Positions 34,264-46,263 of a DNA stretch of 64,000 bases are shown here, piece by piece. This DNA comes from Lepidodermella squamata. Taxonomy: Eukaryota > Animalia > Gastrotricha. Position numbers and translations under genes: made by a program. The stretch's first letter is position 1, and the number at the start of each line of letters is the position of its first letter. Under the pieces are notes generated by a model. It ran no database searches and had not been told where the DNA came from. It saw nothing but the letters and a program-made list of their open reading frames with translations. Location of the stretch: positions 806,001 to 870,000 of the forward strand of contig JBLDXI010000024.1 in the NCBI GenBank assembly GCA_047495785.1, written 5' to 3'.

Positions 34264-35909
34264 ATGGATGTAAAGCTGTTTCTGCTGATAAGCATCGCCA
34301 TCGGAGTTTATGTTATTCTTGGCGCTCTTCTTTTCCAGTTCATCGAAAGCAGGAACGAGCCACCGGTTCAGAATCTCAAAGGAGCAAGCCAAATTTTGAG
34401 TAAGCTCCTTAATTCAGCACCTTTAACTTCAGAAGATATCATAGTTGATTAAGGTGGAAATCTTACTTTGGAGCAGTTCCTAAATGATCTCTTGCACAGA
34501 ATCGCTCTGCCCAACCCAGGATGGACTGTGACTTTACACCTGAATGGCGAAGCTATTGCGAGTGACCAACTTTACATTTGTTCTCGGCCAAGGACATCAA
34601 ACAGAACTAACATCGAGATCAAAAGACCTGCTAACGATTCACTTATTGAAGTCTACGTCGAACGTCACAAGTACAACTGGAGCCTTTACGAAGCTGTATT
34701 TTTCGCCGAGATGTTGATTACATCTATAGGTTACGGCCATATAGTTCCTGTTACCGAGGCTGGTCGCCTGTTAACATGTTTGTACTCAGTCATCGGCATC
34801 CCAATCATGGCTGTCTGGGCGACGGCGATCGGCGAGTTTGTCAAGGTCATGTCGAAGCGATTGCGGGTTAAGATTAACCTGTCCAAGGAAAGGCAGCCTC
34901 TCTACCTCATAGCTGAAATAACCTTCGTCATATCCGCGGGTTCCTTCATCTTCATTTTCCTACCAGCGATGCTTTTTTCTTACATGGATGGCTGGTCCTA
35001 TGTTGAAGCTGTGTATTGTAAGCACGAAAGGATTTGGTGTAGCATTATCCTAAACACGTGTTATTCCTGTGTAGATTGCGTGATAACCCTGTCAACGATT
35101 GGCTTGGGAGATTTCGTTGCTGGTGAGCCGTCTTAAATTTGTGTTTGGTTTTACCCAAAAACTCTGTTTATATAGGTCTCGGAAGAGCCGAAAGCACCCC
35201 GGTGTGGTACCAGATTTTCATTAATTGCTGGTTATTTGTAGGACTTGGTTGGCTCTCGATGATAATCACGCTGGCAATGAGCTTGTTCCGGAAAAAGGCG
35301 AAAAATGTTGTAGCTCAGCTGAAAACTGAGCTGAAAAAATTAGGCGATCAACCGATGAGAATCGCTAAACTGCGGAGGACAGTTTCAGGAAGGCGGCAAG
35401 TTGAAATAATGTTGCCCAACTCTGCGTCGCACCAGCACTTCATTAGCGCGCAAAATACCTCAAATCGTCATTTATTGCTGAGTGATGGTAATAATAACCC
35501 TACTATTACGCTGGACCTATGCGAAAGTCCTACAACTAGACCGCGGTCAGGAATGCTTATTCGCAACTACTCTGACGCCGGTCATCGCCGATCTTCGTCA
35601 AATCACTCGAGCGAGCACTCGTCCTCCCTAATACATATTCACCTGCAGCCGATTAAAGAGAATAGGATGTATCGAAAACCTGATTGGCACGTTGGGGGTG
35701 ACGAATCCTTAGTGAAGCGGGCGTTTCTTCATCCAACGAGTTATCAGCGATCCGTCAGTCATCAGCCAAATGCATACATTAAAGAAACATTGCCGCCAAA
35801 TCGACATGCCAGCAACGCTAATTCATTTATATATGTTAGCGATTTAGGCGTTGTTGAAAGCATCTCGTCCTCCTATGAGGTGTTGAGACCTCGGAGTAAA
35901 AGCCATTGA
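34264..35909 (+). CDS. Two-pore-domain K+ channel (K2P/KCNK family), 4 exons
   Basis: M1 GALLFQFIE, pore 1 ITSIGYGHIVP, GRLLTCLYSVIGIP, WSYVEAVY, pore 2 TLSTIGLGDFVA, long Ser-rich tail. Introns at ~34400-34453, 35018-35074 and 35122-35175. Confidence 0.92.
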
Positions 35910-36059
35910 ACAATTTGTTATTTATTTACATCATACGGAGTGTTTTTGAGTATGATTCTCTAAAGGGTATTATAATTGCTCAAAAAATGTGCGGATTTTT
36001 TTAGCTACAGACGTTGTGCCAATAGTGATAGGATTTCATTCTATAGCTTGGTATAATGA

Positions 36060-36534
36060 TTAGTTGTATCCCTGAAGAAGACTGCCAAGATCGTCGACGC
36101 GCTCATCAACCATATCGCGGGCCGCAAGCTTCGCCCACAGGTAGAACGGCTGAGCGTTGACGTTCTTGCAAATGGCAGGCGACAACAGTTGGCTGCATCG
36201 CTGCAACTTGCGCTCGCGCTCCTTCTGCAGCACCTCACGCAGCGCATCCGTAACAGCTTCCTCCTTGCCCTTTTTCAACATATCCATCAGCTTCACTATA
36301 TGAAACGTCCAGTTATAGAGGGCTAAATAGGCCAATCCTATACTTACTTGTCATGTTCTTCTCTCGCATCGTCTTTGACCCGGCTTGCTGCATTATGCTT
36401 TTCCACGACTCTTTGTTCGACTCGACATCGGCAGAGGTCGCAACGGTCGGGGCTACGTCGGCTTGTGCATCGGCGAAACTAACAGCGACAACAAAGCCAA
36501 AGAGAGCAACTAAAATCATCTCGAATCGGTTCAT
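36060..36534 (-). CDS. Secreted prohormone-like protein, QPFYLWA family copy A (2 exons)
   Basis: Signal peptide, phase-1 intron, then ...ERERKLQRCSQLLSPAICKNVNAQPFYLWAKLAARDMV. Confidence 0.75.
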
Positions 36535-37072
36535 ATTTTTCAGGTTTTGGATATATGTATTAAAAAGAACAAGAAAAGTAAATAGGTGCGTTCCTCCAGT
36601 TGTGCTGATTTTTGGCCTTATCAAGTGGCGGTAATTTAATCCTTACGCATGACAGACCTATACCCTGCGTTGGAGGAGTAATGTGGAATAAAAAAACAAG
36701 AAATCAAAAGGGAGTCTGGCATATGCTATATGGCCTAATTGATTCTCAAATATTGTTCCTCATCAAATATACGAGGGCGTACGAAAATTGCATTCCTCCG
36801 CCTGATCCGTGATATATTGCCAGGAGTCAAATAGGTGATTTTCGGAGGCTTCCCCGCGCAGTAAATTCCATTACCATCCAGTTGCAGATCTAGTTATCAC
36901 CCTTCATCCGATTATAATCCGTCTGTGGAATTCACTTTTTTCCCGGAAAAAAATCGAGATTGTTCGAAAAGAGAGTGAGCCATCCTACGACATAATTAGT
37001 TTTATTTGGAATATTTACTCGAAAAAAAATAAATCCTTATATCTATGAAATTACAATGAAGGGAAACGTGAT

Positions 37073-37837
37073 CTATTGAGTGTTATCTTTGTCTTTAAAT
37101 TTATCCTCGAATAGCTTGTGAAGAGCTATGAGAAACGTGTCAAATTGATGATAACGCCGCTCCTCCGCCTTCTCCATGATATCGATAAGTCTGTTGACCA
37201 ATCGACTCTCGGCGTCGGTCATTGGCGTTTCGTCATCTGTGGTCTTCGGCTGTTTGGCGACAGATTCATCCTCCGCAGAACTAGGACGCTTTTGCCCGGA
37301 TGTGATGACGCCAGGCGCTGGGACGTTCATAGTGTTCTCGACTTTGATGACGGTGAACGGCGGGTGATTTTTGTTCTCTTGCGTTCGCAGTTCGACTATT
37401 TTGTTAAGACAATGGAACCACGCGACGACAGGGTTGCCACCCGTGTGCTTTGTCAACTCTTCAGCCATGCGTTTATAAATCATTTGGTGGGGCGCGTTCG
37501 GCTTGGCGAGCTCATGCTTCACCACGTCATACATAGCGATGAGTCGGGTGACCATCTCAGGCGACCAACTGATTGAGGGCAGCATAGTTGGGGCGGCATT
37601 GTTCGGCTCTTGCGCTGCAGTTCGCCACTCAACCCTGACATTTGGTAGCTGCGAAACAGGGGTCGGCGGTCGGATCCGAGACTGCTCTGGCTGCGGGCCA
37701 GCAGTCAGGTGACTCGGGGGCCAAGGGACACCGCTGGGTCTTGCGCCGGGTGGATGCTGCTGTTGCTGTTCAACAATCCAATCCTTATAATGCTGCTTCA
37801 TGGTATTCATCCAATGCTCAAACTGCGGCTTCTCCAT
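37073..37837 (-). CDS. Myb/SANT-like (trihelix/MADF-type) DNA-binding protein, intronless
   Basis: WSPEMVTRLIAMY...IYKRMAEEL...CLNKIVELR pattern, KRP..K..K NLS-like segment, C-terminal amphipathic helix. Confidence 0.65.
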   Translation of the reverse strand: MEKPQFEHWMNTMKQHYKDWIVEQQQQHPPGARPSGVPWPPSHLTAGPQPEQSRIRPPTPVSQLPNVRVEWRTAAQEPNNAAPTMLPSISWSPEMVTRLIAMYDVVKHELAKPNAPHQMIYKRMAEELTKHTGGNPVVAWFHCLNKIVELRTQENKNHPPFTVIKVENTMNVPAPGVITSGQKRPSSAEDESVAKQPKTTDDETPMTDAESRLVNRLIDIMEKAEERRYHQFDTFLIALHKLFEDKFKDKDNTQ

Positions 37838-38238
37838 TTTTAGTGAATATTGACAAAAAACAATGGGTAAGTCGAGTAAAATTAACAAAGTGATGAGTAT
37901 GATGTAAGATGCGTGACTTCATCGGGCGGTGGTGTTTGAACAGAGAGCCGCGCGCGCGTTGTTCCTTAAAAGCAAATAAACACCCAACTCTTATCAAATC
38001 GACTAATAGACTTTGAACAGGTGATTAGTCAAGTAAGCAGCGGTAATGACGGCGATGCCTTGAGTCATCATTGCCCTCCCTTGTTGGAACAGGCGATGTG
38101 AACTCAAGTTATTTTTTTAATATGAAACAAGCGGCGTTATCATGTGGTCGCGCTATCGATCAGCTAAATAAAAAAATGCGTGCTTTATTTAACAGGAATT
38201 AACGGGTGATGCTAATTTTTATTTTATTATCTCATGTA

Positions 38239-38658
38239 TTAATAAGAAACTTTTTTCTGTCCGTTGAGTTGCGCTCGAATAAGCTCCTGTATCGGATCTT
38301 TCGTCATTTGTTTCGCCGCCATTTTCGCCCATAAGTAGAAAGGCTGTGAGTTGGCGTTGTTACAAATCACCGGCGACAGTACCTCGGCGCATTTTCGAAA
38401 TCGCCGATCCCGCTCCACGGCCATGACCTCACGAAACAGCGCCCGAACAGCTACGTCATCGCCATTTTCCAACATCGCATGCATTTGTCCTGGGAAAAAT
38501 TACGTCAATTAGACAATTAATAAATAGCGCTCTTTTTCGGTTCGCATACTTGCGATGTTTACTTTGACGTCGCTGGCTTCGTTTCGTTTCGGCGTTGATG
38601 CGATAGGATCAACTAGCAAGATTATGATGACCGAAATAAGGGACCTCATTTGTTTCAT
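38239..38658 (-). CDS. QPFYLWA family copy B (2 exons)
   Basis: MKQMRSLISVIIILLVDPIAS signal, phase-1 intron, ERDRRFRKCAEVLSPVICNNANSQPFYLWAKMAAK. Confidence 0.75.
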
Positions 38659-38814
38659 AAATTCAAGTAAAATAAGTGAGTGAAAAATTGAAGGAAACTT
38701 TCTACTACGTCACATTTATATAATATACGTTTTTTTACTATTTTCGTACGAAGCGAGAAAAAAACCATCGGTAATATGAGGGTTGTTCAAAAATGTGTGT
38801 GGTGAAAAGTGAGA

Positions 38815-39342
38815 TTAATCATTATAATTGTAGCTGTTCGTTCGTTTAGCTCGATTGGCTAAAAAGTTGCGATCGACGGGCACACGGACAATGTTCTGCG
38901 CCGCCACAAGAGCCCATAGATAGAACGGCTGCGGGCTGGCGTTCTTGCAGATCGTAGGCGACAATATTTCGACGCACTTGAGATAGCGGCGTTTTCGCTC
39001 GCGCGCATACACTCCGCGTAGAACTTCCGTCGCTCGAGTGGTATCGCCGCTTTCCAGCATTTGCATGACCCGCTCTGAAAGGCAAAATGGGCAGTACAGA
39101 AATTTAATATAAAATATATCTTCGGGATATTAATCTCGGACATAATATTTTTCAATTTTTTTTATACGGCGGAGTAGTAGTTAAAGTGACTGACTCATAG
39201 TATCACGGTCATCCATGAGATCGTTATTTTCAATAAATTCACGGCTGCTCGCTGCAGCTGCTTGATGATAATGAAAACTACCGATCGTCATAAGGGTAGC
39301 TAAGCAAACAGCGCATAACGCCGCTGGTGTTGTGTGAAACAT
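38815..39342 (-). CDS. QPFYLWA family copy C (2 exons)
   Basis: MFHTTPAALCAVCLATLMTIGS signal, phase-1 intron, ERKRRYLKCVEILSPTICKNASPQPFYLWALVAAQ. Confidence 0.75.
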
Positions 39343-41506
39343 TTCCGCGCGTGAAGTTGGAAAAATATTTTGCAGATGGAATATGATGTCAAATATAAGA
39401 CAGAAAAAAGTTGGCTGACTCTCAAGGAGTGTATTTATGTGCGCTCTAAGTACGAAAGTGCGTGGGGAAAGTAGAACGCGCGCTTGACTGCGCTTTTGCA
39501 TGGTACATAGGTGAACGCGGGTGGCCATATCATAAACCTTTTGGTATCATCGTCATCTTCATGCGTGAATTATTCCCACTGGTTAGCCGAAATTTCACGC
39601 GTTTTCATGCACTCGGTACATTTCTGTGTACGTATTTTGATGAAAAGTCAATTCGTCAACGAAATGAAATGCCGTATTTGTTCCAATAATTGCCCACTCG
39701 CTAATAATTACCCATCCCTAATAGTAGCCCAGGTTTAAGGGCCAGGTTTGTTGGAAAGCAAGAAAGATGAACACCAAAAATCAATTTTCGTATTTTTCGA
39801 GATTGAAATTTTAGTAGTCCGGGCTGCTATAGGAACATATACGGTAGCCCCGTTATTTTGGCTCTAACACTTTCTGGCGCCTATGCCATCGATCCCGTCC
39901 TCGTTTTGTATCGATTGCCATTATAAGCCGATACAGTTTCTTGAAATTTTATTGGGAAAATCAATAAAAATGCGTTTTTATGGACGATGATGGCTTTCAA
40001 ATGACACCTGTATTAATGAATCAGCCGTTGTGAGAATTTTGGAGCTTTAGAGACACCTGAGAATTGGGGATAACTTGTCCAATTTTCACTTGTCAAATGT
40101 TGACTGAAATTTCACCACGCACACCGATGAATCATCGTCCTAGTTTTCTTCAAATGACCCATACTTGAGGTAATAACGATGCTACGTACTAAGGTTTCAT
40201 GGTTTCAAGATTCAAGATTCAAGGTTTACCTCACGATTTCCACTTTTTATGCTGATATTACCAATTTTATTTTTGACCTCATTAATTGAAAATTTACGTT
40301 TATTTTCATAATAGAAGGCAAACATCGCTAACTTGCTTGAAGCGAAGATCGTGGTGCTCTTTTTTACCTCTTACCGGCGCTTAAACCGAAATACTCGCTG
40401 CTAGCAGCACCAGCGATCCAGAACCTAATGCTAATTGCTAATTCTCCAATAGACTGAATCTCTGAAAGTACCAATGGCAGCCATTACCCTCTTAGATATT
40501 TCCTCGGTCAGACTCCATTCAAAATTGTTAAATAATGAACAATGAACGAAATGCAATAATTAACACCTGAAAAAGGCAACCATTTCAATGAAACCCGTTA
40601 ACATTTTTAGTCTATACTTGGAAAAACTACTCTCACGATAATAATACAAATTTAACATTCCAAATACACAGCGTGAAGTTATTGAAAGCTATTGGTTATT
40701 GGCACGGGAGCAATAAATCAACTATCCTCATTGGGGTGATTCATAAACTGCTCGGGGCTCATTAAGCACTCTTACGATTAGCACTCTCGCCTTACGATCG
40801 TAATTCTTAATAGATTATGTAATCGACCTACGCACAATTTCAAATCTGCTTTGTGACAAATGATTCATTTTCGGCATTTTGCGAGGTTATTCACTCGGCA
40901 TAAAATAACACATGGGACCTTCCCAGCTGCGAGGTCCTCACGAATGGCCCGAATCCAGATGCCATTGGAATCAGGACCCCGGGAAACGTGTAAAATGTAA
41001 AAAAACAGGGGTCAGTTTTTGACCCGAATCGAATAACCCTAAATTAAGCTATATATTGCAAATATATCAGTGGGCGTGCAGGGCGAGTCAGATCGAAATT
41101 GTTTCATCAATATTTCAAACTACTCTGAAATTTGTCTAACGAACTAGTCAACCGTCTGCGTGTGACTTTTGTCCTGTTGACATAATATTATGAGATTCTA
41201 TGAACCTTTTCAATATGTTTTGTCCTGATCAGTCTCAAATGTTTCCTTATGCCATCAAGTCACCTTGACCTAGTGCTGTCCTTAGGCCACTTCCATAAGT
41301 CACGTACTTCAAGTAATTTAACGAGAGACATTTAAAAATTGGGTTATATGCATTCATAAGCCATCTTATTATATTATTCATTTATTTATTTCTTCATTAC
41401 ATTCTTCATTTCCGGCGTTAGACACCTGTTTAAACACAACGGGTCGGAAGTATGAATATATATATACTATGGTGTAATCGATTTCGTGAATGGAAAAACA
41501 AACTAA

Positions 41507-41910
41507 TCAACGTCTTCGGTACGGCCGATTGACAATGTCCCGGGCAGCCATTTGCGCCCAAAGGTAAAACGGCTGAACGTTAGTCTGCGTGCACATTAAG
41601 GGAGAATTGAAAATTTCGACGCACTCGCGCAATCGCCGCTGCTTGTTTTGTGCCAGGATTTTTTCCAAAATTTCTGCCACCTGTTGCACCTCGCCGTTGT
41701 CAATCATTTTCATTAAGCGCCCTGATGTAAAAAATTCGATTAATTAACTATTTTTTCTCGGTCCCATGATGACTTACTTGCTAATGCATTTTCGTATGGG
41801 TTTCGCAGGTGGTTGATATCTCTTGACAGATGATTAGCTGGCATCGCTTCGTTCGACCACGCTAACATTATTAGCGAAAGCATGACGACAGCAAAAGATG
41901 CAGCTCCCAT
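41507..41910 (-). CDS. QPFYLWA family copy D (2 exons)
   Basis: MGAASFAVVMLSLIMLAWS signal, phase-1 intron, NKQRRLRECVEIFNSPLMCTQTNVQPFYLWAQMAARDIV. Confidence 0.75.
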
Positions 41911-42270
41911 AATTTTCGAAAAATAACAACTACTACTAGTCAAAGAAAGACTTATATCACTCTCTCGGTGTACTTGATTGTATTGATTGGCGAAGAAAGC
42001 CGGATTTTATCAGTCTTGAAAAGTGTCTGGATATTATAATAGGAAATAAAATTTCCGGTGACACCACCCCACACGCCATATTTGAATGGCGATTATTCTT
42101 CTTATAGCCTAAAGCAGTTTACGTCGGCGGTAATAATAGCCATCGCCTATCGCACCGGAGTCGTCATTTCGATTTATTTCTAAATTTAGCCCACAAGAAG
42201 GTTTATTTCTGTAAATCGCTCAGTTATTACGTGCGTTATTCAATAAAAAAAATTATGACATTATCGGCGC

Positions 42271-44455: not shown

Positions 44456-44636
44456 CACCTGATTTTTTCGAAATTTTTAACGTTATTAAATAAAATATTT
44501 GATTCGACGATGAAGCGAGGTTTTAATTTCCATGACGAATTCTGAGTTAATTAGCATATTATAGCGATACCATTGCGCGATGTTAAATTAATGATGAGAC
44601 CAATTGCCACTCATTGATTTTTATTTCGACAAAAAA

Positions 44637-46263
44637 ATGGCGTTTAATTTTATTTTGGTGTTGATTTTGTCTACTGCGGCCGCCGCGTTAGCTTCCGAGC
44701 AGCCAGCCGACGGAACAAACGACATTTTACAGAGCTGGAATGCCGTGCCAGCGACCGATATTTGCATGGCGAACAGCCAAGTTCGGGACAGACGCGACGT
44801 TTACCCAGACCCGGCCGACTGCCACCAGTACATCCAGTGCTTCTACCTTAACGAAACTCTCGCCGTCGGAATTCGCCGACTCTGCCCGGCCGGCACCTTC
44901 TGGCGCGAGATGGTTGCAGCCTGTCTGCCAGAAGGCCCAGCTCAATGTTCCGACTACTGCATGAACAACGACACTGTCCAGGCGAAAGGCTGTTACGCTG
45001 GGCCTGGCTGCCGGCAGTACTTCACCTGCTCCCACGGCGCTAGCTATGCAATGTGCTGCCCTGATGGCACGGAATTCGACGCCGCAACTTGCAGCTGCGA
45101 GAATTCGGAAACGTGCACCGAACCGTGCCGAATTCAATCATCCGCGCCCGAGACGACAACGGTCAAGCCGTCGCAAATGATGAATGATACTGTTTGCCAG
45201 GACTCGTGGGGCACGTACCTATCCATCGTTCCGAATGAACCTAGCGCGTTTCGAATGATCGATGGCTCTGAGACAACGTACCCGGTCATGTACTGCCCGA
45301 ATGGTCTTGGCTTCGATTTGTCAAGCTGTGCCTGTAGCATAGTTCTGGAGGGCAATCTTCAAAGCAGTGTTGGCCCTCAGGAGAGCCGTCGGGCGATTCT
45401 TTACCTGCCATTCGATAGTGATACGGCTGATCACTCAACGCAGCGGTTTTACACGTCGCTGTACGATGGCGCTGACCGCGATGCGAGCACGGCTGCAGAA
45501 GGTTCTGGTTCATTGAACACAAATGGCGGCTTTCTGTCGGTTCCAGGCTTGAAAAATTACGACAGTGGAAACGCAGGGTCATGGTGCGCATTTTTCAAGT
45601 GAGTTTCAAACATTTCGATTTCCATAAAATTTTATTATTTTAATTTAATTAAATTTATTAACTCTTTTTAAAATTTAAAATTTTATTAATTAATTTTAAT
45701 TTTAATTCAATTTTTTTCAGAATGCAGGGAAATACCTGCACCTCGCCCCAGGCAATTTTGTCGAACAACATGGATCCTCGTTCTAAGGACTACACGTTTT
45801 CTATGGGTGTTCGGCCTGAAAACACGTTTGTTGGCCGGATCCACTTGGCCCAGCCGGGAAATCAAGATAAGACCATTCGAACTCAAATCACTGGAACGAG
45901 ACCCGATGGCTGGAATCACGCTTGCATGGTTTTCGATGGCAACCATTTGCAGTTATGGCTGAATGGGGTAAATTAAATTAATTAATTAAAATTTAAATTT
46001 AATTTACTAATTTATTTAATATTTCTTTTATTAATTTATGAATTTTAATATATTTTCAGGAAATGAAGGAGCAGGTGGACGGTGGCGGGTACATGTGGAT
46101 TTCTCATGCTCCAGTCATGGTTGGCTTTGACCCAGCCGTCTCACCTTTCCGAGGCAACATCGACGAGGTGCTGATCACAACTTTCGCGATGACCGCTCGC
46201 GAGGTTGAAGCTCACCGAAATGGCGATCGTGAATTTCTGCGACAGCGTGGATTTTTCGAATGA
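44637..46263 (+). CDS. Secreted chitin-binding (CBM14/peritrophin-A) repeats plus C-terminal LamG/ConA-like domain; Pif-like
   Basis: Signal peptide, PDPADCHQYIQC...CPAGTFW, CRQYFTC...CPDGTEFD, CPNGLGFD. LamG motifs LYLPFD, WNHACMVFDG..LQLWLNG and FRGNIDEV. Confidence 0.82.

Follow-up and report, generated by a model that had tools for sequence, protein, structure and literature searches.

Neuropeptide precursors that carry a disulfide ring, of the elevenin, melanin-concentrating hormone, allatostatin-C/somatostatin and calcitonin types, are small proteins with a signal peptide and a basic motif ahead of a C-terminal Cys-x(n)-Cys ring. The same layout was found in four genes, g1 to g4, at positions 36060-41910 of a 64,000-nucleotide stretch of the genome of the gastrotrich Lepidodermella squamata (GenBank assembly GCA_047495785.1, contig JBLDXI010000024.1, positions 806,001 to 870,000 of the forward strand). 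This stretch is referred to below as the window, and the precursors that it encodes at this locus are 115-140 amino acids long. They differ from the disulfide-ring neuropeptides in several respects: no sequence similarity to a curated family was detected, the ring is set in a conserved domain of about 62 residues that is predicted to be helical, the basic site is half conserved and also predicted to be helical, there is no amidation signal, and the genes have hundreds of paralogs where the neuropeptides have one or few.

Other small secreted proteins offer further comparisons. From background knowledge, invertebrate host-defence families of the Hydra arminin/periculin type and the nematode caenacin/NLP type are similar in their lineage restriction, in the combination of a signal peptide with a cationic C-terminal part, in tandem clustering and in copy number. 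No homology to them was found, however, and here it is the C-terminal domain that is conserved under purifying selection while the N-terminal part varies. Plant alpha-hairpinins and scorpion Cs-alpha/alpha kappa-toxins are, as is predicted for the present domain, cystine-stabilised helix-loop-helix mini-proteins. Two CxxxC motifs in those proteins form two disulfides that tie two long helices together, whereas the single C-x8-10-C pair found here would connect the short loop helix with the place where helix 1 ends, both Cys lying in the first half of the hairpin turn. Aplysia attractin and the Euplotes Er pheromones are also small secreted helical disulfide proteins of aquatic organisms, and are multigene or multiallelic. 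The analogy with them is functional only, since they contain three disulfides with another number and pattern of Cys, and no sequence or fold match to them was obtained.

We found that g1-g4 are expressed, intact, spliced genes, and that they belong to a very large lineage-restricted family, which is new but of a familiar general kind, the taxon-restricted expansion of a secreted mini-protein. The explanation that we prefer, and to which we give about an even chance of being right, is that the domain is exported as a folded mini-protein, essentially without further cleavage, and binds an extracellular partner. Each protein would begin with a signal peptide, followed by a variable linker (10-70 residues) and then a cationic domain (about 62 residues). 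The two invariant Cys (C-x8-10-C) would form one disulfide that staples together a helix, a short loop helix and a second long helix, and the intact mini-protein would act outside the cell by binding its partner, in the role of a ligand or an effector. The family would have grown and diversified through repeated rounds of tandem duplication.

Four expressed genes in the window

A first-pass annotation of the window had proposed four two-exon genes on the same strand, each encoding a secreted, prohormone-like precursor and each interrupted by a phase-1 intron at a shared position. Exon-2 open reading frames (ORFs) were joined to upstream exons initiated by ATG, and the resulting models agree with that proposal: g1-g4 are paralogous two-exon genes, all on the minus strand, with a common intron position two or three codons ahead of the conserved block. 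Window positions 36000-41960 (5961 bases) were compared with three public runs, X1 (DNA), X2 and X3 (both resembling complementary DNA, cDNA). The features of the four genes are as follows.

36598-36535, minus strand: g1 5′ untranslated region; mRNA 5′ end at about 36598, abutted by a SMART-type cDNA adaptor in X2
36534-36348, minus strand: g1 exon 1, putative signal peptide and variable 40-residue linker, start codon at 36534; X3 contig 36594-36348 joined to 36295
36347-36296, minus strand: g1 intron, 52 bp, GT..AG, phase 1; joint 36295/36348 in X3, and X2 loose ends fit the spliced form
36295-36060, minus strand: g1 exon 2, predicted helical-hairpin domain (C-x8-C, QPFYLWA) and stop codon; AlphaFold2 predicted local distance difference test score (pLDDT) 86.7
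38658-38550, minus strand: g2 exon 1, putative signal peptide and short linker
38549-38490, minus strand: g2 intron, 60 bp, GT..AG, phase 1; joint 38488/38549 (cut +1) in X2 and X3
38489-38239, minus strand: g2 exon 2, conserved domain and stop codon; differences in X2 and X3 contigs here all synonymous
39342-39195, minus strand: g3 exon 1, putative signal peptide and linker; mRNA 5′ end at about 39374, abutted by a SMART adaptor in X2
39194-39075, minus strand: g3 intron, 120 bp, GT..AG, phase 1; joint 39074/39195 in X2 (short side 23 letters)
39074-38815, minus strand: g3 exon 2, conserved domain and stop codon
41910-41778, minus strand: g4 exon 1, putative signal peptide and linker
41777-41722, minus strand: g4 intron, 56 bp, GT..AG, phase 1; joint 41720/41777 (cut +1) in X2
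41721-41507, minus strand: g4 exon 2, conserved domain (C-x9-C variant) and stop codon

The products of g1, g2, g3 and g4 are 140, 119, 135 and 115 amino acids long respectively. All four introns were spliced out exactly at the modelled coordinates in cDNA-like contigs of X2 and/or X3, so that every exon 1-exon 2 junction expected from the first-pass annotation was recovered. Read on the plus strand, the skipped segments are bounded by CT..AC, the reverse complement of the GT..AG of the minus-strand genes. The SMART-type adaptor abutting positions 36598 and 39374 in X2 indicates that X2 is cDNA, and that the mRNAs of g1 and g3 begin at these positions. X2 carries another organism code than the best-matching DNA run. 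Its contigs, which would be those of another organism or strain, showed eight coding differences from g1 and g2, seven of them synonymous and one an R>K change in the signal peptide. Contig depth over g1 in the cDNA-like run was about 650-740, compared with about 20-30 for a neighbouring gene, although depth is a poor measure. Near g2 and g3 (38653-38984), several X2 contigs contained joints between opposite strands, which are probably hairpin artefacts of cDNA assembly.

The exon-2 products of g1-g4 are 39-48% identical to one another (pairwise BLASTP E values of 1e-19 to 1e-24), and both Cys, S-P and QPFYLWA are among the invariant columns of their alignment. The exon-1 products, by contrast, had been described as unrelated, and no mutual similarity was found among them even at E 10. 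A signal peptide had also been proposed for each gene, and this was borne out by a hydrophobicity heuristic: all four N-termini are strongly hydrophobic within the first 20 residues (Kyte-Doolittle 2.5-3.3) and are followed by no second hydrophobic segment. These signal-peptide-like N-termini suggest that the products are small secreted proteins. The basic clusters RERK, RDRR, RKRR and KQRR were confirmed three residues ahead of the first Cys in the four genes. The proposed C-x8-C ring is present in g1-g3, but has the spacing C-x9-C in g4. The g4 product ends in RRR and the tail of g3 contains KR; no amidation signal was found in g1-g4.

A large lineage-restricted family

Profile searches of the organism's own 121-Mb genome showed that the window holds four members of a much larger family, and not a family of four as first annotated. 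A profile of the four exon-2 sequences gave at least 150 scored matches among 247 candidates. A 56-sequence profile gave at least 146 matches at E≤1e-12, from 322 first-look candidates of which only 150 were scored, and just 4 of these 146 strong matches contained an internal stop. The matches lie in tandem clusters spread over many contigs (C3, C42, C54, C29, C19, C9, C13, C15, C25/C26, C32, C33 and others). About 190 kb of cluster DNA yielded 78 non-redundant domains. A heuristic model builder found a signal-peptide-like start in 69 of the 75 copies with enough upstream sequence, giving 14 single-exon and 55 two-exon genes. Most of the two-exon copies have a phase-1 intron of about 50-60 bp directly ahead of the domain; the mature protein of single-exon members consists of little besides the domain. 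A search for upstream motifs in 66 family promoters revealed weak TATA-like enrichment only, and no shared regulatory motif.

Some copies recur on separate contigs. The same pair of family genes is present at C25:2197001-2207000 (locus L033) and C26:481001-491000 (locus L034), with proteins 97-100% identical and a synonymous divergence (dS) of 0.20-0.34, and copies at C15:359823 and C105:34743 have identical scores, in the same pattern. Pairs of the C25/C26 type may go back to an old segmental duplication kept under strong constraint, or may be two divergent haplotypes that the assembly did not merge. Because such near-identical pairs are perhaps uncollapsed haplotypes, the copy number is approximate.

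An exhaustive profile search of 1.84 billion representative sequences returned 149 proteins at E≤1e-3, including 32 at E≤1e-10. Nearly all of the relatives are 50-250 amino acids long, with the domain at the C terminus behind a signal-peptide-like start. Four large proteins near the threshold (P0134, P0140, P0145 and P0146) are unrelated prokaryotic proteins and were set aside as false positives. All 30 clusters that were looked up came solely from ENA metagenome or Logan read assemblies, and none had a name or an NCBI or UniRef record. The longer contigs bearing relatives are animal DNA, as indicated by neighbouring genes for Integrator subunit 1, ribosomal protein uS5 and a Cys-loop receptor.

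The first-pass annotation had found no likeness to calcitonin, elevenin, CCHamide or insulin-like peptides, and our searches of curated families were likewise negative. Pfam gave sub-threshold noise only (PSK_trans_fac, VapB and DUF5854) with the four exon-2 products and 50 relatives, NCBIfam gave no match, and a sequence profile search of the PDB gave no matches at E≤1. A word-based protein search found the single match P0001, and eight matches, all unnamed, when a 50-sequence alignment was used. Scanning JGI metagenome contigs with the pattern QPFYLWA[KLQ] produced 44 pattern matches, with no relatives among them. A search for the string PFYLWA found no occurrence in the literature library covered, and one on expansions of secreted families in rotifers found nothing relevant.

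Only the two Cys are invariant throughout the family; conservation reaches 90% or more at F, W and two Ala. The consensus of the domain, which is about 62 residues long, is R-[L/M]-x-K-C-x3-[L/F]-x-S-x-A-I-C-x-N-x(2-5)-F-Y-[L/I]-W-A-x3-A-x2-I-M-x-G, with a Cys spacing of C-x8-10-C across the family. The invariance that had been claimed for QPFYLWA holds within g1-g4, but the family-wide motif is FYxWA. QPFYLWA is the form taken by the motif in a 'long-loop' subfamily with two extra residues ahead of F, to which the window genes and the copies on C54, C9, C13, C32, C31 and part of C29 belong. The domain is cationic, with a mean net charge among 75 members of about +3.4 in columns 1-27 and about +2.1 in columns 28-63, or about +5.5 in total.

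A divergent subfamily has four Cys (for example P0077 and P0131); of the two extra ones, the first precedes the basic position by a few residues and the second is in the C-terminal tail. Their placement suggests that the mature fold may include the segment ahead of the basic site. Members of the subfamily (P0077, P0078, P0084, P0085, P0092, P0104, P0131 and similar proteins) are 150-180 amino acids long, come from AT-rich environmental animal contigs and carry the signature C-Y-x-R-F-Q-R-C-S ... F-C-A-S ... F-Y-x-W-A-R ... I-M-N-G ... K-C-S-P. Two adjacent ORFs on contig L042, of 165 and 161 amino acids, are putative members arranged in tandem.

Predicted fold, selection and possible mode of action

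The exon-2 product of g1 was modelled with AlphaFold2 using the 56-sequence alignment. The model had a mean pLDDT of 86.7 and a predicted template modelling score (pTM) of 0.54, with helices at residues 2-7, 11-36, 39-42 and 48-74. The domain is thus confidently predicted to be a helical hairpin, consisting of a helix, a short loop helix and a helix. In the model Cys33 closes the long first helix, Cys42 closes the short loop helix, and QPFYLWA begins the last helix, of which its Pro is likely to be the N-cap. The first-pass annotation took the conservation of this motif to reflect a receptor-binding surface, but the A-x3-A spacing in this region is explained no less well by packing between helices. 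In helix 1 the conserved hydrophobic positions change face between columns 12-19 and 28-35, and in short members only the second half of this helix can pack on the last helix. Comparison of the model with known structures gave no specific fold: Foldseek found no matches in the PDB, a shape search of the ESM Atlas found only generic helical pieces (template modelling score up to 0.57), a wide VIA-align search gave Z≤4.3 with generic coiled coils and hairpins throughout, and a search of the ESM Atlas by features was uninformative. The exon-2 profile and structure searches that the first-pass annotation had recommended thus assigned the domain to no known family.

Ratios of non-synonymous to synonymous substitution (dN/dS, or omega) were calculated for close paralog pairs and ranged from 0.03 to 0.46. 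When 12 independent pairs were pooled, columns 3-27 (the N-terminal helix) had an omega of 0.24 and columns 28-63 one of 0.11, so that no elevation was seen in the mature region. These low values indicate that the copies are maintained genes, and that constraint extends upstream of the basic cluster. The signal peptide and linker had a dN/dS of 0.20 in three single-exon pairs, a value that separates none of the readings considered here.

Several points weigh against secretion of an intact, partner-binding mini-protein. Secretion, the disulfide, the intact state and the extracellular binding are all properties that we infer. The pTM is just 0.54, and little can be concluded about function from a two-helix hairpin. 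A homodimer prediction with two copies gave no verdict, neither for nor against. Finally, column 27 holds a basic residue in 88% of members, and the positions that follow it are clearly better conserved than those ahead of it, a pattern that a processed C-terminal peptide would show as well.

The last point leads to the explanation originally offered, in which a convertase would release a ring peptide of 40-50 residues. Here a convertase of the furin or prohormone convertase type would cut after the basic cluster and free a one-disulfide peptide of about 36-52 residues, to serve as a neuropeptide, hormone or water-borne pheromone, and the upstream helix would be a pro-region. We consider this unlikely, although it is the alternative that survives best. 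The furin-like motif R/K-x-K/R-R/K stands three residues before the first Cys in all four window genes, and the fit of these sites makes cleavage possible in g1-g4. Column 27, the would-be P1 residue, is the one that is basic in 88% of 75 members, and all of the strongly conserved residues lie downstream of it. The RRR terminus of g4, the KR in the tail of g3 and the mutually unrelated exon-1 regions, which resemble pro-regions in this respect, also agree with processing. Of the same 75 members, however, only 48% carry a dibasic pair there, and the share is 63% when RxxR motifs are counted as well; as the whole helix segment is rich in Arg and Lys, basic pairs arise there from composition. In the model, residues 25-29 of the g1 exon-2 product, which form the basic cluster, fall midway along helix 11-36, in a block with a pLDDT of 93-97, and the site would therefore be placed within a confidently predicted continuous helix and not in a loop or disordered segment. 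The upstream helix is under purifying selection (0.24, against 0.11 downstream) and has a conserved hydrophobic periodicity, which argues against a freely drifting pro-region. The site is missing from P0036 and P0045, close relatives of the QPFYLWA type from other organisms, and the four genes are without an amidation signal. A number of 150-300 paralogs, moreover, to our knowledge far exceeds that of known neuropeptide families. Release of the ring peptide, as first stated, is thus unsupported.

Two further explanations concern biological roles and overlap in part with the intact mini-protein that we prefer. The first is host defence, with the proteins acting as cationic, amphipathic helical effectors against microbes or parasites, secreted by epithelia or glands and expanded in tandem. 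The charge of both halves of the domain (about +3.4 and +2.1 on average in 75 members), the small products with signal-peptide-like starts, and the very large, taxon-restricted set of genes in tandem arrays would all be expected of such effectors. The mature domain is nevertheless conserved, under purifying and not diversifying selection, and the aromatic motif is kept over hundreds of paralogs and across species, which is better explained by a fixed partner or fold than by an arms race. We therefore regard a primary role in defence as improbable. Slightly less probable again is a class of extracellular signals in which hundreds of hairpin ligands would address a common class of receptor through a shared, invariant aromatic docking motif, FYxWA...A..IM, with specificity residing in the variable helix and linker; these might be water-borne cues of crowding, mating or kinship, for example, and a subset including g1-g4 might be matured by furin. 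The second role, bulk extracellular material (egg envelope, cuticle or lorica, mucus or adhesive) built by self-assembly of the conserved helices, is the most doubtful of all: the very high copy number, the apparent depth of g1 contigs (about 650-740 against 20-30, by a poor measure) and the change of face of the helix 1 hydrophobic stripe, which by our reading leaves a surface free for intermolecular packing, agree with it, but the proteins have none of the repeats or low-complexity composition typical of matrix proteins, their variable linkers contain no obvious assembly motif, and the homodimer prediction supports neither side.

Surroundings of the cluster and significance of the family

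The cluster is flanked and interspersed by other features. Directly upstream lies a gene for a two-pore-type potassium channel (34468-35909, plus strand; Ion_trans_2, E 7e-21), whose C-terminal exon ORF ends at 35909. An Atlas search with this channel pointed to no particular phylum, and neither the arthropod cuticle domain PF00379 nor the nematode TTR-52 domain PF01060 turned up in the genome, a weak negative since the controls of those searches were silent as well. Downstream, an ORF at 44604-45602 on the plus strand encodes a chitin-binding peritrophin-A domain (CBM_14, E 8e-12). Between g1 and g2 there is an intronless ORF on the minus strand (37073-37840) that is unrelated to the family and gave a weak Myb/SANT-like match below the cut-off (PF13837, E 0.023); cDNA-like contigs of X2 cover 37207-37790, and it appears to be expressed. 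Between g3 and g4, at 39582-39979, the summed contig depth in the DNA run X1 climbs from about 100 to between 745 and 2222, and loose ends are numerous at 39795-39846. The segment is probably a high-copy repeat or a fragment of a mobile element.

The family, at about 150-300 copies in a 121-Mb genome, is probably among the largest of the organism. Its genes are expressed, intact and under purifying selection, which indicates that the animal invests heavily in them. Defining the family provides a new domain model with which to annotate the genomes of small invertebrates and eukaryotic metagenome contigs, and a mini-protein of 62 residues is tractable for structural and binding studies. The family is also a concrete test case for the origin and expansion of taxon-restricted secreted families. 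If the products were processed signals or pheromones, they would offer a route into the poorly known chemical communication of such animals, and if they formed a class of extracellular hairpin ligands, this would be a previously unseen class of signals in a microscopic aquatic animal.

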